Positions 22,631 to 47,000 are shown, counted from the stretch's first letter. The stretch: 64,000 nt of DNA from Utricularia gibba (GCA_002189035.1 NEEC01000012.1:1550001-1614000), one strand, 5' to 3'. Program-made: numbers and translations. Notes: generated from the letters alone by a model not told the origin.

Positions 22631-22631
22631 G

Positions 22632-22950
22632 TTTGGATCGACTTGTTGTGTTGTAGCTTGTGTATTTCGCACTGCGAGAAGTTAAACTCATCTTTGTGTA
22701 GTTTTTTTTTTCTTTTTGTCTGAACACGAAGGATATATTATTGGGTCAAAAATAGCATAATTTCTATGTTTCTCCAGCCATAGCACTGTAGCTATCAGCT
22801 GCTTTTACTTCAGGGTGTACGGATCTAATTTGTTTTTCAATGTAGAGTTCACAAGGTTATTTCAGCTAACTCTGTGCTTTCTTAACTCTTTTTTTTTCGG
22901 GGTATGTGTTCTTTCTTGGATTAGCTGAAGAGAAGTATGCAGCAGCTTTT
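22632..22950 (+). pseudogene. 14-3-3 pseudo-copy, piece A (intron 1 sequence)
   Basis: Matches the reverse complement of ~52085-52350, e.g. TAGCTTGTGTATTTCGCACTGCGAGAAGT, GAAGGATATATTATTGGG and CTGAAGAGAAGTATGCAG. Confidence 0.85.
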
Positions 22951-22954
22951 AATT

Positions 22955-25900
22955 AATTTCTACTAACATATATAAATAATATAATATAATTATTTTTAAC
23001 TTTTAAAATATAAATGATTATATTTTTAAAATTTATTCAATGTTCAATACATTTATAAGGAATAAATTTATTTTGTACAAAAAAATAAAAATATTTATTG
23101 ATCATTTAGTATAATCTAAGGAATAATGGATGAGCTGAAAAATTACACTCGTGATTAGTTTTTATTTAGTAACATACCTTTATTTCATATTTCATTTGCA
23201 AATTAGTTATCTTAGATTATTTTATTTCTAAATTACCTTATCTTTTCAGTTTTTAAAATATTTTATTATACATATAATTTAAAGATTGTTTTTAAATATA
23301 ATAAGATATTTCTATTCTAACATATTTTCATTAACAAAGAAAATCGATTTTCCTTTATTAATAATTTTCTATTTAATATATCTATTATATATGAAACATA
23401 TAAAATTAAATATTTTTAAAAAATTCGAAATAAAAAAAATTTTTAATTTTTTTTTATTTACAATGGAATTTGATTATTTTTTTAAAATGAATAAATAAAA
23501 TCTAAAAAATTATATACAACATATTTAAAAACTAAATCATTTCACTTAATTTGTAAATTTTACTTCATAACAAAAATGATTATTATTATTGGTGATTAAA
23601 AATATATAACATATTTACAAATATCCACAATCGTTATTATCATTTATAATTTATAATTTTCATATAATAAATTAAATTTTAATGAACATAAGCATAAGTG
23701 CTTATAAAGAAAAAAAAGATTCATTATAAAATTTAAATATTTCGAGTTATAATATGATAAATAAAATATATTATCAATTTTGATTTAACACGTGATTTTA
23801 ATTATTTTTCATAATCAAAATTAAATATGAATAAATTATGTTTTACTTCAATTTTAAGTAAAAAATAGATAATTTGATATAACAATAAGTTATAATCATA
23901 AATAAATTAAAATAATGAAAAGAAAATTAATTCGAATATGAAACATGATTTTAACATAAAGTATAAATGATGTAATACGAATAATAGTATTCAAAAGATC
24001 AAAATTAATATCTAGTTTTTTAAAAAAAACAACAACAATCAATATATATAGCGTTCAATAATACATTTATAAATTTGGCAATGTGGATCAATCTCATCAA
24101 TTGGCTTTTGACCGAACTGGAATTCGCTACGTAACTTCCTACATCATTCGCATCTATAACATCCTGAAAGAACAAATAGAAGACATTGTAGGGCACATGC
24201 AAATTGTATGTATATTCAGTGCAATCCCATGATATAGGAAATATTGCATTGTTAACCTACAAAAATTGTATTAGAGAGATTTATAGAAAAAAATCAAGAA
24301 TAAAGAAAATTAATAAATAATTTAAAATTAGTAATCGAGTTTAAAATCGATTTATATGGAAAGTAATCCACTAGCAATGTGTTGGTAGAGTTGTATTTGA
24401 CTTCAAATACTTCATTCTCCCAAATAGAAAGTTTTTAAGTTCATGGTATCAAATGCGTTGTCGATCCACCTCTCGAAATTGATTATACAATTGGTTTAAT
24501 ACCATAAAAAAACCAAATTGTCCTTAGATATTATCTCCAAGAATGTATGCTACCAATGGTTTGAATATATTACTGTCATAAAAAATACAAAATAAATCAA
24601 TTTACTTTTATAATACAATATTTGAAAACAACTAATATTCTTTTTGATGACCATATTTTTACATCAAAATTTACCTACACCACTCTAAAAAAGATTAAAA
24701 TATGGTCGTAAATACATTGAAAACAAAAATGATTAATCTTAGATGTAATTTAAAAAAATGAAATAAGTAAATATATTAACATTCTCATCCTTTAATTATA
24801 ATAGGAGGCGTAAGACCTCGTGTATTTTTATAATATATGAAATCAGCTAAGTTGTACAATCAACCTTCCAACTCATTCTTCGCATTTAAGAACTGTACTA
24901 GTCAATCTTTCTATCTCTAATTGTACCTTCAATAACTCTAATTGTAATCTTTGTAGTTACATATAAAATAGAAAATATGAGAAAAAAATATGTAATTTGT
25001 ATAAATCATTTAAAAATAAGTAACATATCATCTTGGGTAAGGCATCAACATGTGATAAAAATGAAGTATCCTAAGACTACGTAATGTCTCGTGACACATT
25101 TTAAACATTTGAATTTCCAAAGATTATTGTCGTCGAGATACACTACTTTTAGTACCATACCAAATACGTCTAGTATTTCAAATACCCATAAATGGTGGCT
25201 TAACTATTGACCATTTCAATTGTCTACTCTAAACCCTAAACTAATCAAGGAAACTTTTTATATTTCATCTAACTAATTGATAATTTCATAAAAATAAATA
25301 TGGTAAATTTAACTAATAAAAATCAATAAAAATATAAAAAATTAACCAAAATTTTTAAAAAAATACTATAATCAATTAAAACATACCTTCAATAATTCTG
25401 ATCGAATCCAGGTCTTCAATTATTCCTTTAGGGATTTTAATTGATGGTATTATTTATATGAAACTCATCCACCATACATCATAAGTGTTAAGTGTCATTT
25501 TCTAGTTATTTATTAAATATTGTTATTTATTAATCTAGTGTTAAGTTATCCAATTTAAGATGTATATTAATAAATATTATATTTCCTTAGAAAACTCATA
25601 TTTTTCTATTTTGTATATATTTTTTGTCTTTTTTTGTGCACTTTGAGTGAGACATGTTAGGAGACTGTCGTAGAGTGTTGCAGTAGGTCAAATTCTGGCT
25701 TTTCATGCCTTGTACGCGACTTAGAATAACTGTGGACGGAAGACTGACACTGGTTAAGGCCCCTGACTTACGGCATGTCAGAGTTTGCAGAAATGATTGG
25801 GCTCTAACTTGCACGCATAGGAAAGTTGGTAACGCATGCAAGACAGAAGGAATGATGGGAAGAGGATCATAAAGAGTTAATGTACGTGGAGAGTGATATA

Positions 25901-28900
25901 AAAGCAACTTGAAGCACTTATCTTGAGACTTTTGATCTTTAGACTATGGACATCTTTCTTTTGAGTTCTTCCTCTCCCATAAGAGAGGAAGAACACTTAG
26001 TTTTCAATTTTGTTTTGTATTCATGGTACTTTGTTGCTAAAATCCTTTAGTTTCTAGAAAGTAGATGAAGTTTCCTTCTATGCCCTGAGCAATACACTCG
26101 GTTCTTTGCTGAATTAATTTTGGATTTCGCATATATCTACGCATCTTGTTGTAGTTTTTCTATAACGACTCCTAATCAAGGTTCGTGAGTAGCAGGCCAC
26201 TCCTTCGACCTCCCTAGTAGCGCGTCATTGGCAATAGTTGGGCACATGTGCGCAATTTGGTTTTGAAGACAATCGATGGCAATCCTCTTGTCTTCTTGAT
26301 TGTCCAAGAGGGGAATCACATGAGGCTATTCTCGTGCCTCCTTGTCAATCAGAGTGTAAAGGAGAGTAGGCTATTCCTTGTTCCTATAACCAACTATTTG
26401 GAAGAAATTAGTGAAAATCGAGTCAATGACATACAAAGAATAGGAAATGGAATCTCATTCCCAGGAATTACATTCCACAAATCTCTTTTACAAAACCGTG
26501 ACATTTTGTAGAAATTTCTTACAAAACACTTTTCACAAAAAACAATTTCTTGAGATTGATAGTCATACTACGCTTTCTTGTATTTTACGTTTTAAATATT
26601 TAAAATTTGTTGAGGAAACGACACGCACGATAAATACTTGTAATCCTTCCATAATAATAGAAAAATCTTACTTGCACGTGATAGAAAATCTGTTCGAATT
26701 TGTAACTCACTTGCAAATGATTGGATTGAAGAATACACTTAATGAACATGGAAATCCATCTAATTAAAAAATATAGGCAAAGTCCAATATGTTTGCAATT
26801 GATGATGATATCACATATGTCAATAGAAGCTTCAATTTTCGTAACATTTTTACTACAAAAGGATGAATCGTAAATCATAGATCACATAGAAAATGTTCAG
26901 TGTTAACAGCAAATCCATTATTTTCGATTCTTTCAGGAGCTAAATCTATGATTTGTTGACCATCAATTTTATCCACTTTAACATAGTGTTCCGGAACACA
27001 GTAACAGATACGAATCTTCTCCGCAATGTTCATATGAAATTCCATATCAACTAAATTATAAAAAAATTCAGACATTGTTTTAAATGAAAAAAAAAGAATT
27101 CATTCCATGCAATTCAAATACACAATGAAATGTTTGGAAGTAATATGTAAAAAATAATTGAAAAAAAAATTATTTCCAAACATTCCATCATATGCTAATA
27201 GTGTTTGGAACGCACTACAAACATGTGATGCAATGTTTGGAAATAATATGTAAAACCAAATGAGAAAATATTTCGAGACACTACTAGCATGCGATGCAAT
27301 GCCAGAAAATAATATTTCATGTTCTTCTGAAAATTCTGGTCGTCCTCTACTACTCTTGACCCTGACTTGTAGACTGCCGCCATGACAGTGTACTCATTAC
27401 CCCCTACAACCTGGTGACTTACACGAAATCCAAATTTCTTCCTTGACTTTCGGGTTGTTGCTAGACTCCAAAATCGGGTTAGCCCACTAATCCTTTGATT
27501 TAGCCCACTAATATACCAAAAATCATATTTTCTCTAATTAAATAAAAATACTTTAAAATATAAAATTAACACTTAAACATAATTAAAAATTTATGATTTT
27601 TCATATCCTAAAACATGAAAATCTGTGTGTTTTCAAGAATCCATTTGTGATGCAATAAAAAATTATTGTGTGATATCTTACAGGTTCCTTTAAATAATCA
27701 CAAAAATTCAAAACTTTTTTTGGTATTTAAGAAAATGAAAATTCTTTACCTATAAATTAGAAAAATTACTTAGTATGAGAGAAAAACATAAAATTCTAAT
27801 ATCTTAATTATTCAATTACTTTATTAAAATAAATAGAATGATATGTGTAGAGTTAAGAGACAGTCAATTATATAATTAAATAATGGATGTTGGTGTAGTG
27901 TTAATATCATTGAAAATCCATTTATGTTATATCAATAAAAAATGGTATATAATATATTACTAATTTTACTTTCAAAAAATTACATAATATGAAAGAAAAT
28001 CATAAAATTATATTTATATAAATATAAATATGTATATATACATAATCTCAAATTTAATTAAAATAATATTAAACAAATATTAAAAAACAATGTATAATTT
28101 TTGAATTAAGGTTTTTTGTATAATTTTAATATTAAAAAACAAATATTAAAAAAGTAACAAATATATTTTTTGATTATATTTTTAATTAATTTAATTTTTT
28201 AAAAAATATATATAATCTGTAATAAAAAAGATATGAACCTATAACCATGTAGTTTATAAAATAATCCAAGTTCAATTAAACTACAAATAATCATTAAACA
28301 AGTATTATTCAATTAAGCTTCATGCTGGCACGCAGCACGGAGTTACCATGTGGTGGTGAGGGATGCTAGGCAGTGAGAGAGCGTAGGTGTGTGATGGACG
28401 AGAGGCTAGAGGCTGATTATTTTGGGGCATGGCTAGCATGTTTTGGGGTTATGCTTGATGTTACTAGTTTGCACAAACATTTTGTGGTTTTCGGCCATGT
28501 CCATGATATGTGATTACCTCTTTATTGTTGAAACTTACTTACCTTTATGTTGCTAAATGATTGAGATTGGCTGTCTAGTAATCCAACCCCTAGATGCATA
28601 GGGCAACCGAGGGTAGGATCCGACTAGGGTTTGGACGGGATAAGAATAACCAATGCCGTTGCACATATAAAAAGGAACCTGTTTGCTCCATAGATATTAT
28701 TTGGATAGATTGTATATATATATTTTTAAATATATAATATCAATCGATCTTTAGATGTTATTTAGATTGAATGTATATTTTTTAGTTTAAATTTATATTA
28801 TCAATCTATTCTTATGTATTATTTGAATTGTATATGTATGTATATAATTTAAATTTATATTTTGTATTATTTAATTGTTTTGAATATTTTGAATCGATTA

Positions 28901-29430
28901 ATTATTTGTTCTATATTTTACTTATTATATTAGAATTAAACTGTAATTCATGATAATATAAAATTTTGTACGCTGTAATAAAATTAAATACTAATACACA
29001 AAATCCCATATAGCTATTAGATTAATTATTAAATCAAAAGAAGATCTCTAAGATTAATTTTATCAAACAAGATTTTAGTTAATTAAATTCATAAATACAC
29101 TTATTTATTTAATAAGTATAATAAATGAATATTATTTCTTAGATTCTACTAAATAATAAATAAATATTTTTTGTATAAAATAAATTTATTTCTTATAAAT
29201 GTAATGAACATTGAGTAAATGTTAAAAATACAATAATTTATATTTTAAAACTTAAAATTATCTACATTTTATTGGTTATATATGTAACTAGAAATTTTTA
29301 TAAAAAAAAACACATGAATTGTATTTATTGAATTTAGAATTTAATATATAATGATTAATATTTAATAAATTAAAAGAGATGGTTAGTTTTCAAATAGGTA
29401 AAAGAGAGTATGGTTACTTTCCCAAAAAAC
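22955..29430. mobile_element. ~6.5 kb TIR-type (MULE-like) insertion with nested retroelement remnants
   Basis: Inverted arms lie at ~22955-23125 and ~29135-29295 (TTTTAAAATATAAAT...CAATGTTCA.TACATTTATAAG.AATAAATTTATTTT). A MULE-like terminus is present only on the right (reverse complement GGGAAAGTAACCATACTCTC). The insertion separates 14-3-3 pieces A and B. No TSD was found. Confidence 0.5.
25655..27330. mobile_element. Decayed Tat/Ogre-like Ty3/gypsy remnant: LTR-like segment plus minus-strand Transposase_28-like ORF
   Basis: 25655 starts TGTTAGGAG, with a near-complementary CTCCTAATCA at 26169. The minus frame from 27075 reads through stops: IRICYCVPEH...GFAVNTEHFLCDL*FTIHPFVVKMLRKLKL...SIANILDFAYIF*LDGFPCSLSVF. 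Short tandem repeats occur at 27125-27320. Confidence 0.5.
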
Positions 29431-29485
29431 CCTTCAATCAGGCCTTTTGTTGGGGGTGTGGTGTGTCACTATTTTGAGCGTTTTT

Positions 29486-29833
29486 ACCTAAATAGGACTT
29501 CTGATTGTATGAGACTCCGATGGGTGTGGAATTGACAATAGAGGAGAGGAAATAAGTCTTAGTGGGCTATAAGAATGTAGTTGGATCTCAAAGAGCTTCC
29601 TAGAGAATAATGTCATCCATTGAGCTCAAGGAAGAATCTAGAGGAAATGTGTAGCACGCTAAACAAATCAAAGAGTATTGATATGAGAGTCCTATACTAA
29701 CTTGAGGTTAGATTCTGAAATTGTAGCCTTGAATTTGGGGTTAACTGTTGTTTTTCTTATTGGTTTGATTCTGAATTCAAGACTCAGTAATAATAGGAAG
29801 AAGGTGCCTATTCTGTCAAAGGAAGCTTATGAG
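29486..29833 (+). pseudogene. 14-3-3 pseudo-copy, piece B (parts of exon 2, intron 2, exon 3)
   Basis: Reads [46 protein letters not shown], then GAGAGTCCTATACTAA (intron 2) and CTGAATTCAAGAC...GGAAGCTTATGAG (end of exon 3). It has internal deletions and stops. Confidence 0.9.
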
Positions 29834-30380
29834 TAGAGTTGGGCACGCGTCCAATTCGGCAGGTCATGAGTTGAACCTGTCGAGTAAAAAATGAATTATC
29901 TTACTCGGCGGGTACGGGTTGATAGGTTGGATAGACAGACCTATCTTGAGTCTCAAGTTGACACGGGTTGGTATTTTTTAATAAAATTTAATAATATTAG
30001 ATATGTTTATTGAAACTCTATCACTTTAATGAAAACATACACTTTTCATCCACAATAACACACATTGCACCTCGCTGCTCGACACACTGCAATCGTCGCG
30101 ATAATGTCCTAGAATGGTTGAAGACGCAAGTTGGCAAGGAGTTGAGAAAATATTTGTGAGGTGGTTTTTTAGATTTTGAAGCAGCGGTACACACACCTGA
30201 GACAATGTGGACATCGATTAAGTTGAGGATGTGGTTCATAATATAGATAGGTTCTTCCTATAAGCTAAACAGTTAATGCTCAAATTGGACATGTAAAAAC
30301 TTGGACTTAAAGTGGCAGCCAGTATGGCATGCATTCTTCACTGGGTCGTCAGTGAAGGACAGTAGCAAGAAAAAGGATAC

Positions 30381-30436
30381 ACTTTCTGACCGGCAGTCTG
30401 GAAAGCAGGTTCAGAAGCTTTTGAAGAGCTGGACAT
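30381..30436 (-). pseudogene. Villin (VLN2/3-like) first coding exon; its 5' UTR and leader intron extend to ~31250 (cargo)
   Basis: ATG at 30436 gives MSSSSKASEPAFQTAGQK(V), then a GTATCC donor, matching the villin N-terminus (PAFQGAGQK). No further villin exons are present. Confidence 0.6.
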
Positions 30437-33400
30437 TATGGAATGTAAAACAAGACGCGCACCTGACCCTTATCTTCTACCAGAAACAACTGCAAGAAGT
30501 GATCAAGAAAAACTGAACATCCATCAGATTAAATTCTCAAAATTAAGATTGTAGCATCGAACACTGTCGAGTAAAAGGGGAGTACAAGCAAGAAAAAGCC
30601 ATATTTCTGCACACAGAAAACATGAACCATTTCAGAAGCCATTATGCCAAAAGAATGGAAAACCGATTGACCATTTTGAAAGTGACTATGAAAGTTCCTC
30701 TGTGATTCTTAATACTTCGGATGATAAACTGCAAAATAAGATCAGAATCCATAAACTCAGGCAAGACTCGAATATGATGTCCTGTCATTATAAAAAGATT
30801 CAGAATTTCGACGCCTTCATGGCCATTTCCCGTGATAATCAAAACATCTATGAAACTAGACCAGGAAAATCAAGGCATTGCCAATAAAGACAAGGTACAG
30901 ATCATCAAAAGGACTGTGGCATTCATTTGGACAACCTCTCTCAGAAGAAGATGAGATCCAAGATCTATCCAAAAAGCTTTTAATTCAACGAAGAATCAAG
31001 CAAGAAGATGGATCTAAAATCGCCACCAATGAAAAAAAACCCAGTTAAGAAGCTTCACAAAAGCATCTTTTTCTCTTTCCCAAACTTCTTTCTTCGCAGA
31101 GAAACGACCCCGAAACCAACAATAAAGAGTCAGAAGGACAAAAGTGTAGTAGCATCAGAGCTGGCAGCAAATGGGACTAGAGATAAAAAAGAGAAATTTC
31201 AGTAGGACAACATCAGGGTCAGTGGTTCAGTGCATCCAATTCATTAAACCATATACGTGGTTTGGTGGGTTTTTTTTACTCCCACAACCTTTTTCAGTTC
31301 ACGTTCACTACTCCTTCACAACATCCACAAAGGGAAGAGAAGGGAATATCCGTTGAAGGTAGAAAGACTCGATCCGGGCGTTACATTGGTAATGGTGGGG
31401 GCAACTCCCACACAAGCTGCTTTTTTCTCCTTTATTGTCCTCTTTTCAGTTACAAGATGTTTCATTTCAATCTCATCAAGATCACAGTTTGTGCAAAACA
31501 TCAATGATTCGAATCATTACGCTCTTAAAGCTACAAATTTTGAAACTTTCTCCTCCATGAAATTCCCAAACCAACCTACCATTTTCTTTGGAGGTTCCAA
31601 CTCTGTAATCCAATTGGTCAGAATAGATGCCACAAAGGAATAATTTTTTTAAAAAAGGCAACTACAACGAAATGACAGACTACGGTCAGAAAACATTAAA
31701 ATATAATCACATAAGCATAGCATCATATTCAATAAAATTAAATATGAGTAGATGGAAGTTGATAGTTGTGATGAAGATCTTCCAGGTAGGTAGATGTTAC
31801 TTTAGAAAGGGAATAGAAAATTGACACAAGGATCAATTCACCAAACTCAGACGTGTATATGCATTTGGTACTTTAAAAACCTTTAAATAAATTATATTAT
31901 ATGGAACGGATCCAAGAACTCACCTTTTGACAGACATTTCACCCTAAAAAAATTAAAGTGTGTTCTAAGAATGAAAAATAAAAATCAAATGAAAATTCGT
32001 ATTTTGTCATTTAAAGAAATAGAAATTGTATTTTTTTTAGAAATAAAATTTAATTAGTTTTTGAAAAATCATTAATTTCTATTTTTTATAATGAGAAATA
32101 ATAAGAAATAAGAAATGTTTCTGAATGTATGTTCTTATTAGAGTAAAAATTAATTATTTTTTATAACAAAACTAATTTTAAAATACATTTTTATAACTTA
32201 TATTGTCAGAAAAACATTTTAAAAACAATTTTATTACTAAAATAATAACTTCAAATCACCTTCTTGAATTTTTAATTTTTCAATTTTCAATTATTTTTAA
32301 AAAATATAGAAATTTACTTTCTATTTTCCTAAAAATACTTCTTGAAATGTATTTTTCAAAATAGAATCAAATAGAACCTATTTTATTCAATAGTTGATAG
32401 TTAGTCTTGAAGAATGATTTATTTGGAATAAATATTTGGTAAAAAGTTTTATTGTAAACATATAAAAAAAATTAATTTTAAATAATATCACGTGAATGGA
32501 AAAACATAAGATTATTTTATTTCAGACCTTAAATATAATTTAAAAATACAATACATGCATAAATATAAAAACTTTAACATAATTAAATTCGTCTATCAAA
32601 TATATTTAAAATCTAAATCTATAAATTTTATTTTTATTTTAAATTATGTAACTTAACTTTTAAATAAACTAAAAAAGGTGCCTTTAATATTTGATGTGCA
32701 TAGATGATGTATGAAATATGAGATGTTACACCTACCGCATTATTACAATTGATTTTGGTACCAGGCTCAATTCAATATATTGGCTCTGTATTGAGATTAT
32801 TATTAAAAATATACTTGAGAATAATGGAAAAAAAAGCCGAAAAAATCAATAATTGAACCAATCCGAAATTATTTCGCTTTTTTTTCGGTAGATTCTGCTA
32901 TTTGGTTAAATTGAATGATTTTAAATTTTTAATAAAATAGAATATTAATAGAAAATGATTTTTTTTAAAAAAAATACATTAAATTTCAGTTTTCAATTAT
33001 ATTACTTTTATAAGGCGTAATTGGAAAGAGCAAATCAGCCTTCTTAGTGATGTGGGTTTTTCATGGGCCAAAGCGCAATTTAAGTTTCACGGCCCACGGT
33101 TACTTCGCCACCGTCGTGTTTTTTCGACTCCGGCGCCGTCCTCACTGCTATCGCAGCGAAGCGAAGTGGAAGTCTTGGGGATTAGTAGTCACTTTTAAGT
33201 TGCCGAGCGGCCGACATTCATAGATTGAATTGGAGAAGTTTTCAATCAAAGTCGTTGGGATCAAGCGGAGGTGGCGACGCGACCGGTGGTTTTAGGATTT
33301 TCTTGGGAGAGTGGCTCGTGAGAAACGTTTTTTAGGAGAGTTGACGACTTCAGAAACTTTTCTTACTAGGTACATCAGCTCGAACTGCTGGGTTTGATGT

Positions 33401-33871
33401 CGATGGTTTTGTGGATGTTGGTGTAGCTAGTGTTAGGGTGAAAAAGCTTTCTCCTTGGATTTTTTTTAGATATGGGTTTTGGCTGGGAATTGTCTGGTTG
33501 TGCTGCTCATAGTCAGTTAACGAAGTTCAGTGTGATTGTGTTTTTCCCTTTGTAACTTGTTATTTTTGTGTCTCGGGTATTGATGGACATTCATATACTC
33601 ATCGAACTCGCATTTCGTGGGTTGATGATGCATCTATCAATTTGTAATCTTTTTTGATGGCTTGCGCCTATGTAAAGCCCCGCTGGCATATGTAGTCATT
33701 ATCTGATTCTGCTAGGTTTTCCCAAGATTTGTAGTTCACACGAAATTTCTTTTGTAAGCATCAGAAAATGCTGCTATCCTGTAATTTTTTTTTATTTCCG
33801 TTCTGCAAAAAGGATCAAATGAAAGGCAGTTCCTATAAGATACAATTTGAATGTTGCAGAGGTCGCCGGAA

Positions 33872-35574
33872 ATAGCTGCTACTAGCGGAGCAAGCGATTT
33901 GTCTTCAGAGATTGAAGTGGATTCTTTCAGACGTCTTTTCCCTCTGCAGTTTCACGAGCGCCATCTAGTTGAATCAATAAGGCCTGATGGGCGCCCTCTT
34001 GGAAAAGCTAGAGACACTACCGTTATGCTTGGTGAACATTATTTTCTTATTTTTTCTGTTTTATTTTTGAGTAGGCGCATTGTCACTAGAAATCTCGCAA
34101 TCATGTTTCTAGGAGCTGTAGCATCTACTAACGGATCAGCATTGGTAAAGATAGGGTCAACTGTAAGTCCCTTTTTCGGTGGCTGCTGATGGGTATGAAG
34201 AACCTTTTATGTTAGGGAATAATGACAGCTGTGTTTACTATCCTCAGACAATGTTAGCTGCCATCAAGTTGGAAATCATGACTCCGACTGCAGAGGCTCC
34301 GAATAGGGGATCCTTAGTTAGGAATATATATATATATATATGGATATATATATTTTGCGTAGGTAACCTAAAATTTAATCTTCCTCTTTACGTATTTAAT
34401 GGTTCTAATATTTTTACAGAAATTGATTTTCACATGCCTGCTATATGCTCTCTGCTGGTTCGCCCTGGCAGGCCTGCGGAAATAGCTCCTGTAATATCAA
34501 AACAATTATCCGATGCCATTTTGAGGTTAGGGGTTTTTGGTTTTCTTTGGGTATTGCCCTACGCCCCTTCGTTGACACTGATCTGTTAGGATTGGTATTG
34601 TTCTTTCAGTTTTTTGTATTGTCTGCTTGCTAACTTAAACTCGCTGAACATTCAAGTTGGTAGTTGATACTTGCTTCTTATTTCACTAGCATACTATTCC
34701 TCTGAAATACTGCTGCAGTTCTGGCATGATTAACATGGATGATCTATGTTTAGTCAGCGGTAAAGCTGCTTGGATGGCCTTTTTGGTAATGAATATTGCA
34801 TCCCCTACACCCACAAAGATTCCTGCTATCGGCATAATGAATAAATAAAGATTGTTGCAGGATGTGTACTGTTTGGATGCTGATGGTGCCCTTTTCGATG
34901 CAGCTATGCTAGCCGTTGTGGCTGCCTTCTCCTCTTGTATATATCTTCTTCATTTTACTCCTAAATTCACTGTTTGTTTACCCAGCCTTCCAGATTGATG
35001 CATAAAGAATTGTCTCGCAGTGGAGATACCAGTTGTTTCGCTGAACGATGATGGAAGGATAGTTCTTGTACCTGAGGTGAGTCCTGGGGAGATGACTGTC
35101 AAGGAGCCTATCAACGTAGAAAAGAAGAAGCTGAAACTCAATACTCTGCCATTTTCACTTACGTGCTTGCTTCACAAGAACTACATCCTGGCTGATCCCA
35201 CATCCGAGGAAGAGTCCATTATGGAGACATGCCAAACGGTGGTGCTGGACTCTTCATATCGCCTGGTTTGGCTTAATAAGCCTGGTGGTTCATGTCTTGC
35301 ACCCACACCAGCAATCAGGGTAACTTTCTTGTCAATGTTACCATTAGTAATTGACTCTGCTGCCCATTCATATGTTTGATTGTCCATTGACTCTTTGTAT
35401 ATTTGATTGTCAGTAGCTTGTGTGATTATGCAAATATGTCTAATTCTTCATGACTGTAGAGCCACGTTGAACGTTTCTTTTTGTGTGAAATGTATGCTTT
35501 GCATGCAGGAATGCATAAAACTGGCGCGACAACGGGTAAAAGAACTCAGGAAGATCTTGAGTGAGGCCATTTAG
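33872..35574 (+). pseudogene. RRP43: Exosome core subunit RRP43 (EXOSC8)-like, near-complete 8-coding-exon copy with damaged start (cargo)
   Basis: Exons give SDLSSEIEVDSFRRLFP, SIRPDGRPLGKAR, GSALVKIGST, IDFHMPAICS, KAAWMAFL, DVYCLDADGALFD, LADPTSEEESIME and RQRVKEL. The expected ATG reads ATA (33872), the donor at 34318 reads TT, and the protein ends EAI*. The promoter (site II motifs 33064-33096) and a leader intron are retained. Confidence 0.85.
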
Positions 35575-36140
35575 CCTTTTCTCTTCCATCATGAAAATTC
35601 ATTCAAGCCACTTGAAAAGATTTTGTTAAGCTAAACCTTCAATTTTTTTTGTTTGGTATAGGATTCAGTTGGTTTTCTAGTTTATCGGTTGCACTTTAAT
35701 TTGCTTTTTTTAAAAAAAAAAATGAACGAGTAACAATAGTTTTGATTCATATGTTTAGGTTTGTTATATTAACTGAAATCGATTAAAAATTGATGGATAT
35801 TAGTTTGCTTCAGCTTTTGTTTCTGGTTTTGGATTATCATCCTTGAATTAACATGTTCTGAGCAACCACTCAAAGCATGCGTTATGTAAAGAATTTCTAT
35901 TGCATAGAGTAGAAGACATTGTGATTAACTGAAGGGCTGTTAAAAATTGTGTGTTTACATTTCACAGTGGAGAGAAATGAATGCCCTTGAAGCTTTTAAT
36001 TGGACAGTTAATCACTCCAACCCGTTAGTCCTGTGTCATACAACAGTGAGGAATAACTACAGAAATCCATAACCTATATGCAAACCTTAATATACACACA
36101 TTCCTAATAAGTTTGCAGGAAACAGCTCTATTAAGCTTCA

Positions 36141-38545
36141 ATGACCATACAGAATGTTGATGATCTGCTTCTCAAAGGAAACTGTCTTATCCTTATGAGC
36201 CGGCTGAATTTCATTCTTGGAAATTCTCAGAGACTGAACCTTGTCCATTCAGAGACTGCATCTGAGAATTCATTTGACCTTCATTTGTCTGCATCTGAGA
36301 ATTCATTTGACCTTCATTTGTCTGCATCTGAGAAATTTGAGGCTGTTGCTGCTGAGGTTGCTGTGCAGCAAGCATGTGTTGTCCTTTCTGCAATGAAGAC
36401 ACAGGCTTTCGAGGCCCATTTGAATTCAGAATGTGGATGATCTGCTTCTCAACCTGAACTGTCTTATCCTTAAGAGCCGGTTGAATTTCATTCTTGGAAA
36501 TTCTCAGAAATGAAAGCAATCGCTCCAACATTCCCTTGAAAAAGTAGAGCTTATCAAATTGGTCACCCTTTGGCATGAGGAATCGAATCATGCTGCAAAA
36601 GCAGAAGTAAAGTCAGTCGAAAATAAAAATGTTGATAATCAAAGTGAATTTTCAAAGATAAATCTGGCCTTTTATAAATAATTTGTTTGAAGAGAGACTA
36701 GTTTGCAGTGCATTAAGGTGAAATTTTATGTGCTTTATATGCCTCATTAAGAAGTAGATTATAGGCATTGTGCTTGGTCGTATAAGTAATTAAATGAATA
36801 ATCTCATTTACCCCTATTTAACAGTTATTTACTCACCTTATTCGAAATACCCATTTAAAAAAAAAGAAAAAAGAAATCAACGATTTCAGTTGTAGAATCC
36901 TACAGATATTACTGTTACCTGACGTGAATAATGCTCAGCATCCCTTGTCATGGACGCTACTTGAACTCTCATCTCCTGGAATTCCACCTAAAAGAGCCGC
37001 ATACATTTAGTACAAATTTCCCATTAAATACTTCCCCCCTAGATAATTCCTTCCATGAACTAGTAGGAACAAATAATTAGTATTTTTGAAGTTTATCTTC
37101 ATTGATGTATGGGCTAAACTATTTATCGCTGAAGATAATTTATTGAGCAGAAGATAGAACATATACCTCCATTAATGAAAGTTTACTTTCAGCCTCAGGA
37201 TTTATTGGTAAAGCTTGATGAAACGTTAAAATGATGAAAAGAAGTATAAGAAAGTGGGAATAAAAATTTGATACACGGCAATAGAAATTGAATGATACAG
37301 AGTTGGAAGGAAATGTATTCTTAAAAAAAAAAAAAGAACCAGACGTCATACGTCAAATCGATTTAAGTGATGGATTATACACGCGTGATTACTTTCTATC
37401 AACAAAACCTACATCAGCTTTCAAATTTAAATAACCACAGATTGTGAAGCACAAAACACACCAATCAACCACTTGATCAAAGGTGACCAATTAGAGTACA
37501 ATGAAAATCAAACAGTAGCTCACCTGCTGCAACTTTGCAACAAGTCTATGGTATGCTTCGTTTAATTCAGAATAATACATCTCATTCATGGATTTGATCT
37601 GCAATCAGCCCAAAAGTTAGGAAGACTAAAGTGGAGCTTCACACAGAAAACGCACACGCGACTGGTCACAGTTGCCAATCTCCACCTAGATGTAATACCT
37701 TTTGATACGTTTCTTCTTGCCAATCTCCGCCTGAATTTCCCATCTGTGACGAGGGATCTGGAGATGCTAAGTTTTCAAAGTGTTAGATTAAGCAAAAGAG
37801 AACCATGCTGAAAAGCAGTAAATGAATTATACGGCACAATCCAGACAAGGAAAGAACATTCAATTTTTGAATCCATGGCCTGCACTAATAGCTGAGCCTC
37901 ATTATAAAGGGGATGGTCTGCCGGTGAGAATATATCGAGCCCAAATGCCACAAGAGCAAGGAGAGTCACCTTCTCAATGGCAACAACTAAAAAAAAAAAA
38001 GAACTCTTTTCATATACTTCAGCGATATTCTGTACCTGGGTCCTGCGAATTACTTCCACCACCAGGCTGCATAGAATCCGGATTCTGAGACTTTGTCTCC
38101 GCAGTTAACATCTTCATAGATATTTCTCTTAGATAATCTGACTGTATGTCCAATTAAAAGACAACAGGAACGGTCATTATACATGTAACGCTCAGCGTGT
38201 ATGCAGGAGGAAACAGGGGAAAATTCATTTAAACCTGGCTTGTTGCTGCGATGTATTTCTTCTCCTCAAGCCTGACAGCGATTTTTTTGAGTTCTTGCAA
38301 TCCCTCTGGTCCAGAATAAGGAAGATGCCTCTTCAGCGTCTCCATTCTGCAATCGAAAGCATCATAATTGATACTTATCTCAAAATCTTAAAAGACACTC
38401 CTCCACCTAAACTTAAAACCTAATTCTTACATTTTATTCACAATTCTCTCCCTAGAATCTTGTTGCAGGTGACCCCTCCAATCACCGCCTTCCATTCCCG
38501 CGTTTGCCACCGGCTCAGCACCCACGACCTGACCAGGAATTTGAA
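36141..38545 (-). pseudogene. Mediator subunit MED15a-like (KIX domain), short decayed copy (cargo)
   Basis: Exons read GDWRGHLQQDSRERIVNKI, METLKRHLPYSGPEGLQELKKIAVRLEEK, DYLREISMKMLTAETKSQ, GGDWQEETYQK, IKSMNEMYYSELNE and MLERLLSFLRISK...EKQII. There is a frameshift at the start of the ~36590 exon and a damaged N-terminus. Confidence 0.8.
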
Positions 38546-40120
38546 CATGGGCATGCGTTCCTCAAATCGTTAAAAAAAAAAAAAACGCACATAACCTTAT
38601 ACAAAAAGAAGATGATGCACTGAAACTTTTCGCTTCCAAAATCAACTTTACGACGAAGAAAGAAAAAAAAAGGCAACTACAATCAGGTTGGAAACGAAAC
38701 AAAGGGATCAGGAATTTTGACCTAACGGATTGGAATGCTTGTTCAGACAGCAGCCGTCACGAAAATATAGCGATTTTCTTTTCATTTTTTTTAAATTATT
38801 AATTATATTTTCAAATAATACCATAAGCAATCTATAAATTTAATTGTATTTAATTTTTCATTTTTTAAATTCAGTGCAAAAGCTATTATTTCATATATAG
38901 TATCAAATGATATATATAATTAAATATTTATTTTCATCCTTTAAAATGATCCACACCATACACACAACAATTTTAAAAATAGAAATATATATTAAATATA
39001 TAATTTAGTATTGAATATAATGAATTATATTCAAATATTTTTTAAATTAAAAAAATTAAATCTAGTTTTTTTCCTATATATCAAGTATATTGAATTAAAA
39101 ATGATATGGTCAAATGAGATTATATTAATATTTGATATTATTCAAAAACTTAGAATATAATCTACATGACTTATTTCATAATTTTCATTTAATTTATAAA
39201 TATAATTTATTAAATGAGTAAAACCTAAATAAGTAGTTGTTGTGTGCACAACATTTGAAAAAATTGATGACTTATTTTGATAAGTAAACAAAGGTAACTT
39301 ACAAAATAAGCTGGATTTTGAGTAGAAATGTAAAGAAATTTAAAATAAGTAAAAATTAAGTGAAAGTTTGAATAGAAATTATAAATAATTAAAAATTAAA
39401 ATAATATATAATAATTTATTTTAAGGAAAATATTATTTTTTAAATCATAATATTTGATTTATTTTTATTTTACAATCAAATACTTTATCTTGTATAAAAT
39501 CTTAATAAAAAATTTACCAATAAATTTATTTTATGCCATTACAACCAAAAACTCATGGTAACTAACTATCACGATTATCATTTGCACTACTTTCTTTTTT
39601 TGATTCAATAATTATGTATTTTTTTCAAATAATTTCCCATAATTTTTAATAATTGTGCTGAAAAATAATAATTAAATCAATTATAACTTCAAATTTTTTT
39701 CGATTTATTTGAAAAATACATAATTATTGAATAAAAAAAGAAAATAGTGCAAATGACAATCGTGATAGTTAATTCCCACAAATTTTTGATCAAGATATCA
39801 TAAAATGAGTTTATTGGTAAGTTTATTAATTGGATTTTATATAATATAAATTGTTTAACTGTAAAATAAAAAAATTCAAACATTGTAATTTAAAAAATAA
39901 TTTTCCTCTAATTTTAATATATACTTTAAATTACAAGTAAAAAAATAAATCATACATATTATATTCTTAGATTAATAATATTAAAAAAATCGACATTTCT
40001 CTATTTGATTAATTGATGGATTAAAAATGATGTGATGTAATTTTATTTTTTTAAAATAAGTAGTAAAAAATAAAATGCGCTCCCCCGTTCTTCCATCAGG
40101 TTCACTAGTTTGGTCGTCCA

Positions 40121-40890
40121 TCAATGCCTGAAGTGCCTTACTTGGGTGAAGACGAGCGCAACTCCGTACTTGTTGCAGCAGTCCACCGCGTCGGGATCCC
40201 TCAGGCTGCCGCCCGGCTCTGCGATCACGCCGACGCCGCTTCGACACGCTTCCTCCACGGCGTCGTTCCAAGCTGCGACGATGCACCACAACACAAAACT
40301 AAGAGGTGATGGAGGATTCCAAGCACGCCTTCTAGAAGGAAAATGTACCGAATGGGAAGAACTCATCGCTGGCCAGAGCAGCTCCCCTGATGTCATCCCC
40401 TGCCTTCTTCATCGCAATCCTCAAGCTCTCGAGACGGTTCGGCTGGCCGCATCCCATACCGAGCATGCACTTGTTCTGTCCAAAATAAACTTGCTGCAGT
40501 GAAAACTAGTGAAGTGTGCAGGAAGTCAGGGGAAATGCAGACCTTGGCTATGACAATGGCGTTGCTCTTCACATGTTTTACGCAGAGCCATGCGAATTTG
40601 GCGTCGTCGAGTTCATTTTCCTGTGGGGATTTCTCTGAGCGGACACTGAACTGGATATCCTCCAGGCTTAGCTGATCTGCCTCCTGAACCAACCAGCCAC
40701 CGCTGACTTGCCTCAGTGCAATCTTTCCTCCTGTGCTTTTGGTTGCCTGGAGGATTCTCAAGTTCTTGGACTTCCCTCGGAGTATTTCGAGGCCCTTTTC
40801 GGAGTACTTGGGAGCGATGATGATCTCATAGAACATGCGGGTTTCTCCATCAGTTGGACTCCTGAATTCTCTTATGTCTCTAGCTAAATC
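40121..40890 (-). pseudogene. purH: PurH (AICAR transformylase/IMP cyclohydrolase), last three exons only (cargo)
   Basis: Reads [53 protein letters not shown] (the usual motif is SDAFFPF) and PGGSLRD...VRHFRH*. The 5' exons are absent. Confidence 0.9.
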
Positions 40891-41792
40891 CTGAGAAGCA
40901 AATAGGATGAACACATTAAGAGGCCTGAGGATTTTGCAACGATCAAAGTTACCATATGCCCACGACATGTTCATTTCCAAAGTCACACCATGAGTTATTG
41001 ATTATTCTACGAAAGTTACCATATTGAATATTTTAATGTTCATAGGACTTTGGCATGTAGGTGACTCCAAACCCTTGCTTATATGGTTGATTCTTGGACT
41101 TATGAGCAATTTTTGAAATTCCTAATTTTGGAGCTTGGTGCGGCTTGAATGCATCTGCAATCTTTGTGTGAAAATGAAAATTAGGACCTAATTTTCAGCC
41201 TTTGTGATTAAAGTTTTTTTTTCAAATATTGATTTCAGCTTTCTGCACCTCTGTACTTGATGTTGCAGAAATTTGTTGAATTCTCTGTGTTAGAATTTTT
41301 TTTTCTAAAATACCTGTTGTTTTTTTTATTCATCAAAATGACTTTGGTTTGACATTTAATGCTTGTCTCGTGTTTTTTTTTAACATTGCCTGTTGTTTTG
41401 TTGCCTCATGATATTTTGACTCATCAAAATATCTTTTATTTTTATTTTAATCAAATATTTTATTACCAAAAAAACTTTTCAAAATATTATTATTCAATTT
41501 CATGATTTTTTTTAATTCTATTCACATCTATATTAGAAATATGGAAAATTTCAGATTTAGAATTAGATTTAAAAATAGAAATTTTAGGGAAATTGAAAAA
41601 GAATGTAATGTATTTTAAAACCAAAAATTCAAAATATTAATAAAGATACATTTTGAAGAGTTTTTTCTCAAATATAATTGAATTTTATTCTATTAATACT
41701 AAAATTTTTGAATAGTATTACATTTTTAAGAAATATAAAGATTTAACTTCTGTTTTATTAGATTATTTTTCAAAAAAAATTAACTTAATAGA

Positions 41793-41854
41793 TTTACATA
41801 ATTCAGATTAGGGTAAAAAATCTAAAATTTAGGGTTTAGGGTTTACATAATTCA
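41793..41854. repeat. Two telomeric TTTAGGG units between 13-bp direct repeats
   Basis: TTTAGGGTTTAGGG at 41828-41841, flanked by TTTACATAATTCA at 41793-41805 and 41842-41854. Confidence 0.75.
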
Positions 41855-43224
41855 AAGGTATACATTTTTTTTTGCATCTGGTCGAATATTAGGAAGTCCA
41901 AGAAATGTAAAATAATCACAAAACAAATTTAAACCGGTTGACTTCACCCTAGAATCAAGCATGTTTACTAGAATATCAAAGACTATGGAAACCAAGGCAG
42001 ACAACACAACATGTGTGATAGGATAGTAAACATCATTAAATAATCTAGTGTATTTATGAAAAATAAAAAGCAAGTCAACTAATATGTCAAATTTAACATA
42101 CACATCATCATCAATCATAATATTTAGATCGGTATGCGTAGTTAAAAACAATGAAATAACTTCTCTATAAGGAATAAAAGATTGAAGCATGAAAACATAG
42201 AATTCCATCGTGTTGACAAATCTTTTTTTAGAGTTCGAAAGGATAGACCCTTTAACTCATATAGATGCTTAAAAGATACTCTTTTTGTGCTAAACATCTT
42301 CATATGATAAACTATCCTACACACATGCTAGACAAAACAGCCTCATTATCATTTTCATTTAGTGCATCTTGTATATATAAATTAAAAATATGACAAATGC
42401 ATCTTGATCTAAATAAACACCAACCTAAAATAATATTCATGGATGATTTCAATATGGATGTCACAACAGTATTATTTGGAGCATTATCAAGATGTATATT
42501 AAATATACGATCAACAATTACATATTCAATACATATAGAAGTAACAAATTCAGCAATTTATGCCCCCGTGTGTGGAGAATCCAAAGGTCTAAATCCAAAG
42601 ATTCTCTTTTGTATAAATCATTTGCAATCAATTCAATGAACAATTACAACTACATAATTCTCACCATTAATACCATGTCAATCATCACAAGTCAAACCAA
42701 ATTTACATTTCATAGATTGAAAATCAAAGATCAAACGTGATTTTTTTTTTGAATTGTTTTAATGCAATTCTAACTACTTTTCTTCGAGACATGGGAGCGA
42801 ATCTAGGTTGCAATCTAGATTAATAAAAATTTCTAAAAATTGGATTTTCTACTTCTACAAAAGGCTTTTCACTAGCAATCAATGTAAGTACATAATCAAT
42901 TTGGGTAGCATCAAGATCAAATGAAAAGCTCAAAACATGACCACACATAAAATTTATAGTAGGTTGTCTCAATGAAGTACATATCTCATTTATATGCTTA
43001 TTTCTAATGTGACGAATGAAATTAGAAGTTGAATCATGTTTACCATGGTCATACACGATTCCACAATATTTATAACATACCTTTTTGGCCTCCTTATCAC
43101 AATTGAAATGTTCATGCCAATTGATGCATGAAGCATCTTGTTTTTTTGAGGTGAAAGAGACATCTTCCCCATCGCTCGACACCTCAATATCACACTCGAG
43201 ATGTTGTTCGTGTGAACGTATCAC
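41852..43224 (-). pseudogene. hAT transposase remnant (BED finger + N-terminal catalytic region), C-terminus missing
   Basis: BED-like WHEHF...CYKYC...STSNFIRHIRNKH, then KPFVEVENPIF, HLDNAPNN and KDLSTRWNS, and YYP(T)-like motifs, with many stops and frameshifts. Confidence 0.85.
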
Positions 43225-43783
43225 ACTTTGATGTGATTCTTCAATATTTAGTTATCTGAAACACAATTGAGAGAAACAAATCACTCCCAAACCTTACATA
43301 AATAACTATAAGCCGCAGATACACACGTCCATTTCTCTTTGGATAGTTGCGCACATACCTTTTGGAAGGTCTCCAAACACCGCAAAGCATGTGGGTTCTA
43401 GAGATTCAGATCCAATTGTTGTCCGACAGCCTTCAAAAATTCAGAATTCAGCTCCTAAATGCGCAATGAACAACACAAGCGTTTGAATATTTTCTTGTAT
43501 TTAAGCAAAAGGGTACAAGCGTTTCATAATCATGTTATGAGCTGCCCATGTATTTATATTCTTGTGAATTGGGACTTTGTAACATCATATACATAAAATA
43601 GATTGAAGTCCAACAATTAAGCAGCCCAACACTTCTTAATACACTACACTATAGGTCCATTTTGGCTAACCCATCAGGTCGACCTGTATTGGTGTACATT
43701 GACCCATCCCATATCTATTTTCGATGGTTACGAGTAACAGATCAGACCCCTCACGGGTCAACCTGTATCCATGCCCAGTTCTA

Positions 43784-44012
43784 CTTATGAGGTATATACT
43801 GCACCACTTGGCATTCTTAATGACCATATAAATTGTTTATTGTATGTTTGCTGCATATGATTGGAAGCTCTATGCTATTTAATCCTTTTGAATGGTCAAT
43901 GAGTTTCAGATTTTTGATTAGTCTAATTGATTCATATTTTTTTATCCACTAAAAAACCGGCCTTTTGCATTTTTGCTTTCTAATTGACGACTAAAAAAGC
44001 AGTTGAGGCAGA
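43784..44012 (+). pseudogene. 14-3-3 pseudo-copy, piece C (intron 3 and start of exon 4)
   Basis: After the TSD, GTATATACTGC...TTGCTGCATATG...TTAGTCTAATTGAT...TTTTTATCCACT.AAAAACCGG...AAAGCAG.TGAGGCAGA matches the reverse complement of ~51325-51542. Confidence 0.9.
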
Positions 44013-47000
44013 TTTGTGGCTCTACTCCATTCTTCCTGCCCACAACTTCTGTTGAAACTTAGAAGAGGCTTCAAGGATGAGCTGAGTGGAGCTTTGGTCG
44101 TCTCCACCAAGTCAAGAAGGATAATTGTGACGTCACTGAATCATCTACAAAAAGCTTTGGCAGATTTCTTGTGTTAACTTCTTGCATACAGCTGATTGAT
44201 GATGGTTTAGTTTGGCTGGGATGAGCATGTCATGTGCAATTTGGATTTATGTCATTTTTTCTTATTCAGAATATGCTTTCAAGGCAATCAAGGGTGCTTG
44301 AATCACCTCGATTGTGGGTGTTCACCTAGCTTCAGATACTTACTTGCATTTAATTTTGACCGGTTGAGCTTTTGGATTAGACAAGTCTTTCCTAGTTGTT
44401 TTGGATTATCAAGTACCTTGGTTTTTTGGCCATTGGAAGGACGTATATGCTCATTGTAGTATACCTACCCTTTTATGTCTTCAATCCGATGCTTTTCAGA
44501 AGCATTTGACTTCTCTCTGGTTGTTATTTTATTGATTGTGGAACCTCATAGTAAGAAAACTATTCTTGCCATTCTTCGTTCGTGTGTAATTCACATTGGC
44601 TTGTCTCTTGGTTGTACCTAATGAAAGGATTCTTGTTTAGCAAGTGAGTAATTAAGCAATGGAGTTCTGTTTTCCTTATGGCCATGAAATACCTGTTGAT
44701 GTGGTGGCAAGATGGTAGATGTCGAATTGTTCATCATTTTTCTGGTGGTTCGGTTCATTCACATGTTTTTCATCTCTGTATCAAAAGTATTATTTATTAT
44801 TTATTCATTCTTGTTTGGTAGTCTTGTATGCAGGATTCATGACCAATCTTAGGTCACATGAGACCTCTTAGTGTTTGGTGTGGATGTTCGTATATGTGCC
44901 CACAAAGTTGCTATGCTCCTTGGCATTGATGAGCAAAAAGGCTCTCACTCCTTCCAAGTGTGATTCTGCTGGTCATTGCTTTTTCTATGTAAGCATTCAT
45001 CTGGTCAAAAGATCAAGAGGCCATCAACTTTCTAGAGAAGAAGATGAAAAATGATCATGTATTCAGATACCATGAAACTATGCAAGTAACATCAAAATGC
45101 TTCTTCTTTTAAGGGTAGGAAGGAACCCACCGTTCACTGGTGCTACCTGTTGCGTTTTGTAGGAAATGGAGGAGAGATTCATAAAGAAGATGAAGAATAT
45201 AAGGGAGTAAGAAAACAGAATTCTCATTGCCCAACCAAATGAAGTATAGAGTTGGTTTTTTTACTAAACAACATATTTCACAAAAAGATCAAGTATTTCT
45301 GATTAGTGAGACAAAAGGAGACTACACAATAATAAAAACTCTAGGATGGTCTTTAGTCAATGATTCTTGGAGGTGCCTATTGAATAGATTTGGATTGGAT
45401 TGCTTGATATATCACTTGATGCCTTCTATGGTAGGAGATGTGGTACTGTCTTACTAGGAATCAGAACCAGTCAGTCATCTTTGCTCATTGCTTTCATATC
45501 TTTCTTATTTTAGACAACATTCAGTCTTACAAGAGGATTTCAAGGCTGGTGAGGTCGTATTGCTATTCATTCAAATGCCCATCTACGTTGGCATCGTGCA
45601 AAAGGATGATATAGCAAGCGATGATCATATTTTGTGTGAAAAAAAAACGATCATTTTTTTATCTTCATGTATATGATAGAAATACAAGATAAGTATTTTT
45701 CAAAATGATTTATGTCAAAGGCTTCATACATCATGCTCAAATCATGTATGTAGTTTTCAAGATCATTTTATGTACTTCAAATGAAATTAGCTAATTGTTT
45801 ATTTTATTTAAATTCAATTTTTAATTCATCATGAGATGAGTTTTTTTTATGTAATTGACTATCAAATGTGAATTAATAAAAAATTAGATTATATTAAAAT
45901 AATCTAACAGGCTTAAGGTGTTATGACTCATTATAATATTGTCCATTTTGAACACCCAACCCTTATGGTTTTATGTTATCTTCTTTTGGAGAAAAAACAT
46001 CATATAAGATTAAGATGATATCTCTATTTAAACACGTCTTTTTCCTCGTTTATAACTAATGTAGAATATAATAACCATCACAAAGAACTTTACATTTGAT
46101 GCGATCTAAATCGACTACTAAAAGGAGCTAAAAGATGCCCTAATAAACTGGCACAGGTCGACAGATCGACAAGTATCATAGTTTGCCAGTAATGGTCATT
46201 TTGGATAGTCTGAAAAGTAACCAAATTACGACAATGTAAGAATAGTCGACAATTATCCGATTATAGGACTATGATACGGTTGGCAGACGTAGAAAATAGT
46301 TGACATCTATAAGATTCAAAATTCGATCGAATTAGGCTCCTTTATAAATATAAAAAACCCTAAGGAAGAAAGAGTTAAACTCCCAGCTTTTTAATTTGTA
46401 TCTTTTCTCTACCTCTGTCTGATAAACCATCTTCCGACGAGCTCCAACAATTTTATGGTTTTTCCATTCTTTGACGGTTTCTACGTTAAAATCCCAATCT
46501 ATTTTCATTCCTATCATCCGCATCGTTTCATCCAAAACGCTTACATTCAAATCCGATCCAACACGTGCACCTTCGCCCGTAACCCAGAAATCAATCCCGC
46601 CTCATTGTCAATTTTCAATCACAACAACATTATATTTATTCCCTTCTTATCTTTGAGTATCACCTCATTTCACCATTAGCATGATCTTAGGTTTAACATC
46701 CACTTAAAATATTTAATCCTTACGATTTTATGTTATTCATCTAAAAAAAATATTTCATGTAATATTAAAAGGATACTTCTATTTAAACACGTTTTTCTTT
46801 TTTATATGTGACCAATATGATATACCATAATCATCAAAGACCTTGGATTTACATAAGGAAAAATGTTTTAATTTGTTGATTAATCCATTTTTATTTAAAA
46901 TTAAAATAAATTGTTAATGATAACAGAAGATAGACGCGTTCAATCGACGAGTGCGGCTCTTCCGATGTGCCCGTTACGATTTTCTTTTTAATATGTGTAA

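Follow-up and report, generated by a model that had tools for sequence, protein, structure and literature searches.

The window analysed here, a 64,000-nt stretch of the Utricularia gibba genome (GCA_002189035.1 NEEC01000012.1:1550001-1614000, positions counted from its first nucleotide), contains an inverted pair of 14-3-3 gene copies. The minus-strand copy (51000-52600) is intact, with five exons, while the plus-strand copy (22608-29833 and 43784-44030) is 80-87% identical to it, has lost parts of exons 2-4 and has taken up at least two large insertions. Between the two segments of the plus-strand copy lies an element of 13,950 bp (29834-43783) with the ends of a hAT transposon, which encloses a transposase remnant lacking the C-terminal third and, in that position, ~11.9 kb of host DNA (hereafter the cargo), including a complete RRP43 gene and parts of a MED15-like gene and of purH (Table 1).

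Boundaries and termini of the insertion

The sequence reads ...AAGGAAG CTTATGAG / TAGAGTTGGGCACGCG at the left boundary of the element and ...CCATGCCCAGTTCTA / CTTATGAG GTATATAC at the right one, the 8-bp target-site duplication (TSD) CTTATGAG being perfect (8/8) at both ends, as a first-pass annotation of this DNA had reported. It is compatible with the hAT target consensus nTnnnnAn. The intact paralog, located 21 kb away by a six-frame motif search, offers the corresponding empty site: in the alignment it is uninterrupted across ...AGGAAGCTTATGAG/GTATATGC... and has a single CTTATGAG. In a self-BLAST, positions 51543-51604 pair with 29833-29771 and 51325-51550 with 44012-43784, the two matches overlapping by exactly the eight TSD bases, and deletion in silico of the insertion and one TSD copy yielded a single BLAST high-scoring segment pair (51604-51325 against 29771-44012, 81%, 286 bp). 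The position at the exon 3/intron 3 junction also agrees with the reading frames of the paralog. Since the paralog reads through and the flanks rejoin base for base, as the annotation had proposed, all 13,950 bp were inserted at the end of exon 3, and the element is a real insertion relative to the paralog. The 14-3-3 copy that received it is a pseudogene: exon 3 has a frameshift and has lost 10 nt, most of exon 2 is gone, exon 4 is not recognisable, and the first intron contains another 6.3 kb. These 6.3 kb are enclosed by AT-rich inverted repeats of ~170 bp (22955-23127 and 29131-29296, 84% identical), a structure that resembles a Mutator-like element (MULE) and at which no clean TSD was seen.

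The 12-bp terminal inverted repeats (TIRs) begin with TAGAG and TAGAA and agree at 10 of 12 positions, each being one transition away from TAGAGCTGGGCA, in accordance with the first reading of both ends. A scan of the whole window for 8-bp direct repeats bracketing 12-bp inverted repeats with at most two mismatches returned 49 pairs, compared with ~8 in shuffled sequences. This criterion is too loose in AT-rich DNA, and TIR and TSD alone are thus weak evidence; their statistics were dropped, and the case is carried by the empty site and the transposase remnant. No TIRs were found inside the element, the only near-match (30424, two mismatches) being at chance level. The motif RGGTYGR, defined after inspection of the ends, occurs three times in each terminal 200 bp versus 0.12 times per 200 bp window-wide. 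Subterminal CGGGT repeats had also been described; they are present at the left end (three copies), but the right end has the motif just once, as ACCCG.

The transposase remnant and its relatives

A 143-aa open reading frame (ORF) adjoining the right TIR gives a weak zf-BED match (E 0.0028, below the Pfam cutoff). A phmmer search of the full library retrieved 11 relatives, among which P0126 (687 aa) possesses a zf-BED (PF02892), a hAT-like RNase-H (PF14372) and a Dimer_Tnp_hAT (PF05699) domain. Residues 26-310 of P0126 align with 43215-42363 by tblastn (E 8.6e-33), and BLASTP carries the colinearity to residue ~434 at ~41980, including the TRWNS and YYPT blocks, the remnant being colinear with residues 26-434 overall. 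The BED/DDE transposase remnant recognised in the first-pass annotation is confirmed by this colinearity, the zf-BED signal on the remnant itself being weak. Its coding capacity is gone, with at least five in-frame stops, at least three frameshifts and the C-terminal third deleted. A 30-aa match to another hAT relative (P0132) at 31047-31136 (E 0.01) lies on the wrong strand and was taken as chance.

Two short contigs of run SRR2033663, L005 (against 43390-42600) and L006 (against 42821-41856), share ~85% DNA identity with the right arm. As they are 86.5% alike in their overlap, they represent two further copies of the family. L006 runs on to FDVLNWW, the start of the dimerisation domain, whereas the homology of the window to it stops abruptly after ...ATGTATACCT; the right arm is therefore delimited as in Table 1, and the C-terminal third of the transposase was deleted and replaced. 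The absence of PF05699 from the window copy, where homology ends, shows a deletion in a family member and not exclusion from the hAT family. Stops common to the remnant and L005 or L006 follow a mosaic pattern, some of them possibly parallel TGG-to-stop changes; they were rejected as proof of ancestral death and used only as support. All three family copies seen (window, L005 and L006) are dead. On the basis of the TSD, the TIRs and the P0126-colinear remnant, to which the apparent enrichment of a subterminal motif defined after inspection may add, the element is a non-autonomous member of the hAT superfamily.

Host-derived cargo and its age

The cargo is made of at least two donor blocks. In pieces, the RRP43 match to the human protein extends over residues 6-246, the eight exons are all open, and the 850-bp 5' region has a normal CpG content. 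For all seven introns but one there is exactly one canonical in-frame GT-AG solution; the exception is intron 3, which offers only an implausible 57-nt intron in which a (TA)n run would be read as codons. An exact match to the product of the RRP43 exon-1 ORF led to a single contig, L007, from the Logan collection of run SRR2033663, which is 98.99% identical to 33569-36141 (15 substitutions and 7 gaps in 2,580 columns). At position 34318 L007 reads TTAG/GTAGGA and the cargo TTAG/TTAGGA; intron 3 thus has no canonical solution because the cargo copy lost its splice donor. Coding differences amount to 3 of 915 nt, all non-synonymous, and non-coding differences to 12 of 1,654 nt. The window contains nothing related to the final 102 bases of L007, and consequently a separate RRP43 locus exists and a cargo junction lies at 36141/36142, which answers for this gene the question, left by the earlier annotation, of a separate donor copy. 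The RRP43 exon-1 ORF was the only match in exact look-ups of 20 ATG-ORFs of the arms, cargo and flanks, three further cargo ORFs, an intronless 369-aa ORF and the copia polyprotein; these look-ups found no donors for the MED15-like and purH blocks. A junction 31-mer was absent from metagenome contigs. Among the searches made, contigs of SRR2033663 provide the sole close matches to the hAT family of the window as well as the sole exact match to one of its ORFs, and the run probably represents, at low coverage, the same species or a sister species.

In the MED15-like gene, three consecutive exons correspond to KIX_2 profile positions 2-20, 21-58 and 58-82. The exons from ~37770 onwards presumably resemble a region of Arabidopsis MED15a ~600 residues further on; a PDB search gave no match supporting this mid-protein assignment, the profile-tested part being the KIX_2 exons. 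The glutamine-rich middle and the C-terminal half are missing, and the fragment ends at the zone of the 85-bp duplication and the 33-bp tandem repeat. These two repeats, beside the junction at 36141, fit a reading as marks of template slippage. The spacer that separates the 3' end of purH from the MED15-like promoter contains a palindrome (arms ~78-81% complementary) that may be a foldback element or an inserted miniature inverted-repeat transposable element (MITE).

The three purH exons are all open and free of lesions, with canonical introns of 67 and 73 nt and the same exon structure as in purH contigs of other plants; the next upstream exon is absent from the cargo. The best database identity is 78%, as expected of a poorly sampled lineage. 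At 54 near-invariant columns the fragment has 2 mismatches, while for other sequences the median is 1 and the highest count 6; relaxed constraint was accordingly rejected, this value being in the range of bona fide plant sequences and showing no decay. We also considered a conserved purH-MED15 neighbourhood and set it aside: in a 10.9-kb purH contig from another plant (L001), no other cargo gene occurs within 7 kb, which is uninformative. The telomere-type repeat TTTAGGGTTTAGGGTTTA lies 10-25 bp from the breakpoint between hAT and cargo and may represent a telo-box of a promoter, interstitial telomeric DNA or a relic of the repair event.

The first-pass annotation had listed pieces of villin, RRP43, MED15a and purH with introns and promoters. 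The last three genes, their introns and the 5' regions of RRP43 and MED15 are present, RRP43 being a whole gene and not a piece. Villin has no such support: all ORFs of 28 aa or longer in 29990-31900, 47 in number, gave no Gelsolin or VHP match in Pfam at E<=1, two pieces gave no PDB hit, and a regular-expression search found no headpiece motif. The protein search had a length filter that placed full-length plant proteins outside its scope. Rfam and tRNA scans found nothing.

Table 1. Features of the element, its flanks and the paralogous empty site (positions in the window)
Feature	Position	Strand	Remarks
TSD copy 1, CTTATGAG	29826-29833	+	Forms the 3' end of exon 3 in the host 14-3-3 pseudogene
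Left TIR, TAGAGTTGGGCA	29834-29845	+
Left subterminal arm	29834-29990	+	CGGGT x3, RGGTYGR x3; inner limit approximate
1.9-kb stretch, A-rich on the plus strand	29991-31900	+	Annotated as villin in the first pass
AT-rich spacer	31901-33000		GC 0.18, like intergenic DNA of the window
RRP43 promoter/5' untranslated region	33001-33850	+	GGCCCA motifs; CpG observed/expected 1.0; L007 homology starts at 33569 (contig end)
Block matching L007	33569-36141	+	99.0% identical; homology ends abruptly at 36141/36142
Complete RRP43 gene	33851-35574	+	8 exons, 915-nt coding sequence, 304 aa; exon 3 donor GT>TT at 34318
Junction zone	36142-36334		85-bp copy (36147-36231) of 36424-36508; perfect 33-bp tandem repeat 36256-36334
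MED15-like gene part	36211-38495	-	ATG at 38495, three KIX_2 exons, then jump to mid-protein exons
MED15-like promoter and AT-rich spacer	38496-40120		490-bp palindrome 39421-39911
purH (AICARFT/IMPCHase), last three exons and stop	40121-40893	-	Exons 40893-40543, 40475-40347, 40273-40124
Intron remnant and AT-rich filler	40894-41855		Telomere-type repeat TTTAGGGTTTAGGGTTTA at 41828-41845
hAT right arm	41856-43783	-	Transposase remnant ~43215 to ~41980; L006 homology ends at 41854-41857
Right TIR, TGCCCAGTTCTA (reverse complement TAGAACTGGGCA)	43772-43783	-
TSD copy 2, CTTATGAG	43784-43791	+	Followed by GTATAT of intron 3
Paralogous empty site, single CTTATGAG	51543-51550	-	Exon 3/intron 3 junction of the intact 14-3-3 gene

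Cargo and donor are ~0.6% apart in substitutions, an upper bound if SRR2033663 is a sister species, compared with ~14% between the hAT arm and its nearest relatives. In the transposase remnant, ~410 codons contain at least eight disabling lesions, whereas ~770 recognisable cargo codons have no in-frame lesion, ~15 being expected at equal neutral age (Poisson estimate). The damage seen in the cargo consists of the GT>TT change at the RRP43 splice donor and of the rearranged, truncated state of the MED15-like gene. These comparisons show a young cargo and an old transposase, at least the RRP43 block being a recent copy of a gene extant elsewhere. Lesion counts and divergences together argue that capture came after transposase death, which is well supported; on both points, the lesser decay of the cargo and the order of events, the analysis agrees with the first-pass annotation. 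The hAT arms have a TG/CA excess of 1.36, similar to that of the MULE in the window, and the CpG content of the cargo promoters is normal. Dinucleotide decay agrees weakly with older arms and a younger cargo, CpG depletion having been set aside as a clock that discriminates only weakly.

Elsewhere in the window lies a very young Ty1/copia long terminal repeat (LTR) retrotransposon (57164-62510), with 390-bp LTRs that are 100% identical, TG..CA ends, a 5-bp TSD (GGGGG) and an uninterrupted polyprotein ORF of 1,584 aa on the minus strand (57333-62087); it sits in the 3' end of an ALOG/LSH-like ORF (56625-57242). MULE-type transposase ORFs of 219, 180 and 136 aa (11623-13347, plus strand) adjoin a very AT-rich tract (7000-11000). 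Inverted repeats of 190 bp (18078-18267 and 28235-28425, 83% identical) contain a 12-bp inverted repeat without mismatches, CTACATGGTTAT, with the direct repeat TTTATAAA at its flanks; the pair may consist of two MITEs or mark the termini of an element of 10 kb. A lectin-domain ORF of 361 aa on the minus strand has a partial duplicate, 76% identical, 4.6 kb away (19927-20904 and 15396-16270).

Origin of the loaded element

Gene capture has been called rare for hAT elements, the documented cases carrying short fragments (PMC3260210), and both the capture and its models are documented (PMC3260210, PMC8903248). The closest counterparts are the maize Ds2 and Ds-like elements (Du et al. 2011, PMC3260210), hAT deletion derivatives with both termini, part of the transposase gene and an 8-bp TSD, whose interior has been replaced by unrelated host DNA, including exons and introns that were copied from a gene the genome retains at another place. 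They belong to another TIR family, are mostly ~1 kb long and carry one short fragment (e.g. two exons), whereas the element described here carries 11.9 kb from at least three genes, one of them complete with its promoter. Pack-TYPE elements (Gisby and Catoni 2022, PMC8903248), which include Pack-hAT elements in maize, are likewise non-autonomous TIR and TSD elements with coding host DNA inside, the newer DNA being internal and the conserved family DNA terminal. Their worked examples (maize Pack-PIF and a rice Pack-Mariner cluster) have captures of tens to hundreds of bp and clustered copies, while our element is known from a single copy and retains a transposase remnant, unlike strict Pack-TYPE calls. 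Larger still are hAT macrotransposons such as Tam3L at maize White Cap (Wc) (bioRxiv 10.1101/082677), where hAT ends and one 8-bp TSD surround many kb with whole genes; the Ac/Ds macrotransposons of Huang and Dooner (2008), as they are cited in bioRxiv 10.1101/082677 and PMC3260210, are of the same class. In macrotransposons, both ends are complete elements and the DNA between them is one contiguous donor interval; the present insertion has a short terminus on one side and a truncated element on the other, retains no inner TIRs and carries a mosaic cargo. Double-strand-break repair can move genes as well (Wicker et al. 2010, ref 33 in PMC3615480), copying and pasting genic DNA at the kb scale with sharp breakpoints, but it does not need transposon ends, whereas here a hAT element received the DNA in its interior. 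Pack-MULEs and Helitrons form similar multi-locus mosaics of gene fragments with retained introns; the former have a 9-bp TSD and long TIRs, the latter neither TIR nor TSD, and neither set occurs here. The element therefore belongs to a known kind and is unusual in its size, its mosaic content and its complete gene with promoter. Of the earlier description as an unusually large gene-shuttling hAT element, the size holds for hAT gene capture, but it is surpassed by the whole-gene hAT macrotransposons.

We tentatively prefer, at somewhat less than an even chance, to see it as a Ds2/Pack-type non-autonomous hAT element that was loaded with host DNA and then moved to this site as a unit. A break inside an already defective hAT element would have been followed by repair synthesis with template switching, which would have copied in the cargo. 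The loaded element would then have been excised and inserted at the 14-3-3 site as a single unit by the transposase of another family member acting in trans, which would recognise the TIRs together with the subterminal motifs and cut with an 8-bp stagger, and the cargo copies would now be decaying, with the RRP43 splice donor lost and MED15 and purH present as fragments. The retention of both termini, the loss of the interior, the filler, the sharp breakpoints and the junction duplication match Ds2-type derivatives, explained in PMC3260210 by gap repair that is interrupted and switches templates, and the perfect TSD together with general Pack-type behaviour leans towards transposition of the loaded unit. 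Several observations weigh against such a movement. The loaded element is known from a single copy; the three family copies are dead and ~14% diverged, which makes a recent source of transposase hypothetical; 14 kb is far above typical hAT elements with captured fragments; and both TIR mismatches are C/G transitions that must predate the insertion if it is as young as the cargo, whereas they fit long residence at the site more simply.

Another explanation is a substantial possibility, namely that an older, defective hAT element was resident at the 14-3-3 site and that the cargo never travelled with it. An aborted excision, or any double-strand break, would have been repaired from ectopic templates, the repair removing the 3' part of the transposase gene and pasting in 11.9 kb. 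The old arms (14% from relatives, at least eight coding lesions, TG/CA excess of 1.36), the young cargo (0.6% from its donor, normal promoter CpG), the two TIR transitions, as expected from long methylated residence, and the death of every family copy seen are all in line with such loading in place. For Ds, it is established (cited in PMC3260210) that abortive gap repair makes deletion-plus-filler derivatives at the resident site with the TSD kept, and gene movement by double-strand-break repair is common in plants, as in the Oryza brachyantha analysis (PMC3615480). Conversely, a filler of 11.9 kb drawn from two or more donors is a long one, the TSD copies have not diverged (8/8), and old arms are equally expected of a non-autonomous element mobilised in trans. 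Copying into a resident dead element and movement of a loaded one fit the data about equally well. By comparison, it seems improbable that two hAT fragments flanked the 11.9 kb at a donor locus and that their outer ends were used together, as in Tam3L at maize Wc, the Ac/Ds macrotransposons and the Catoni model for Pack-TYPE elements. The succession of purH 3' end, spacer and MED15 promoter, and that of spacer, RRP43 promoter and whole gene, do look like natural neighbourhoods, and whole-gene precedents exist among hAT macrotransposons (bioRxiv 10.1101/082677, PMC3260210, PMC8903248); but inner TIRs are missing, the near-match at 30424 being at chance level, MED15 and purH are truncated, and the divergence of L007 at 36141, inside the cargo, means that the latter is not one contiguous copy of the RRP43 locus.

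Mosaics of fragments from several genes are typical of Helitrons, and another capturing element (Helitron, Pack-MULE or CACTA) nested in the hAT element might have brought the cargo, which we consider very unlikely. Helitron mosaics of this kind are mentioned in PMC3260210, but no long TIRs, LTRs or other bounding repeats surround the cargo, and hAT sequence does not resume beyond it: the C-terminal part of the transposase is missing rather than displaced, which amounts to replacement and not to simple nesting. Still less probable is an assembly artefact in which the inner junctions are chimeric joins. No observation speaks for it, and against it stand the outer junctions with their TSD, TIRs and paralog-verified target, the uniqueness of the cargo, which has no repeats in common with the rest of the window, and the coincidence of the 41856 junction with the exact end of homology to L006, an independent relative.

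The locus combines clean boundaries with an internal control, the empty paralogous site in the same window, and one cargo junction is mapped to the base. The cargo is dated (~0.6% from its donor) against arms that are ~14% from their relatives, and includes a complete gene with its promoter whose decay has just begun, with a single hit at a splice donor. That a hAT family in this plant lineage is able to capture and mobilise composite host DNA of more than 10 kb, with a whole gene and its promoter in it, appears doubtful on balance; if true, it would be a working route to gene duplication and to promoter and exon shuffling, at a size so far tied to macrotransposons, Helitrons and CACTA elements and not to single hAT derivatives. 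If the preferred movement of the loaded element did take place, one defective hAT element can duplicate whole genes; if the element was loaded in place, the locus would be a well-resolved case of a transposon whose interior underwent templated repair on a large scale. Under both readings, it offers a useful test case for the origin of Pack-type elements.

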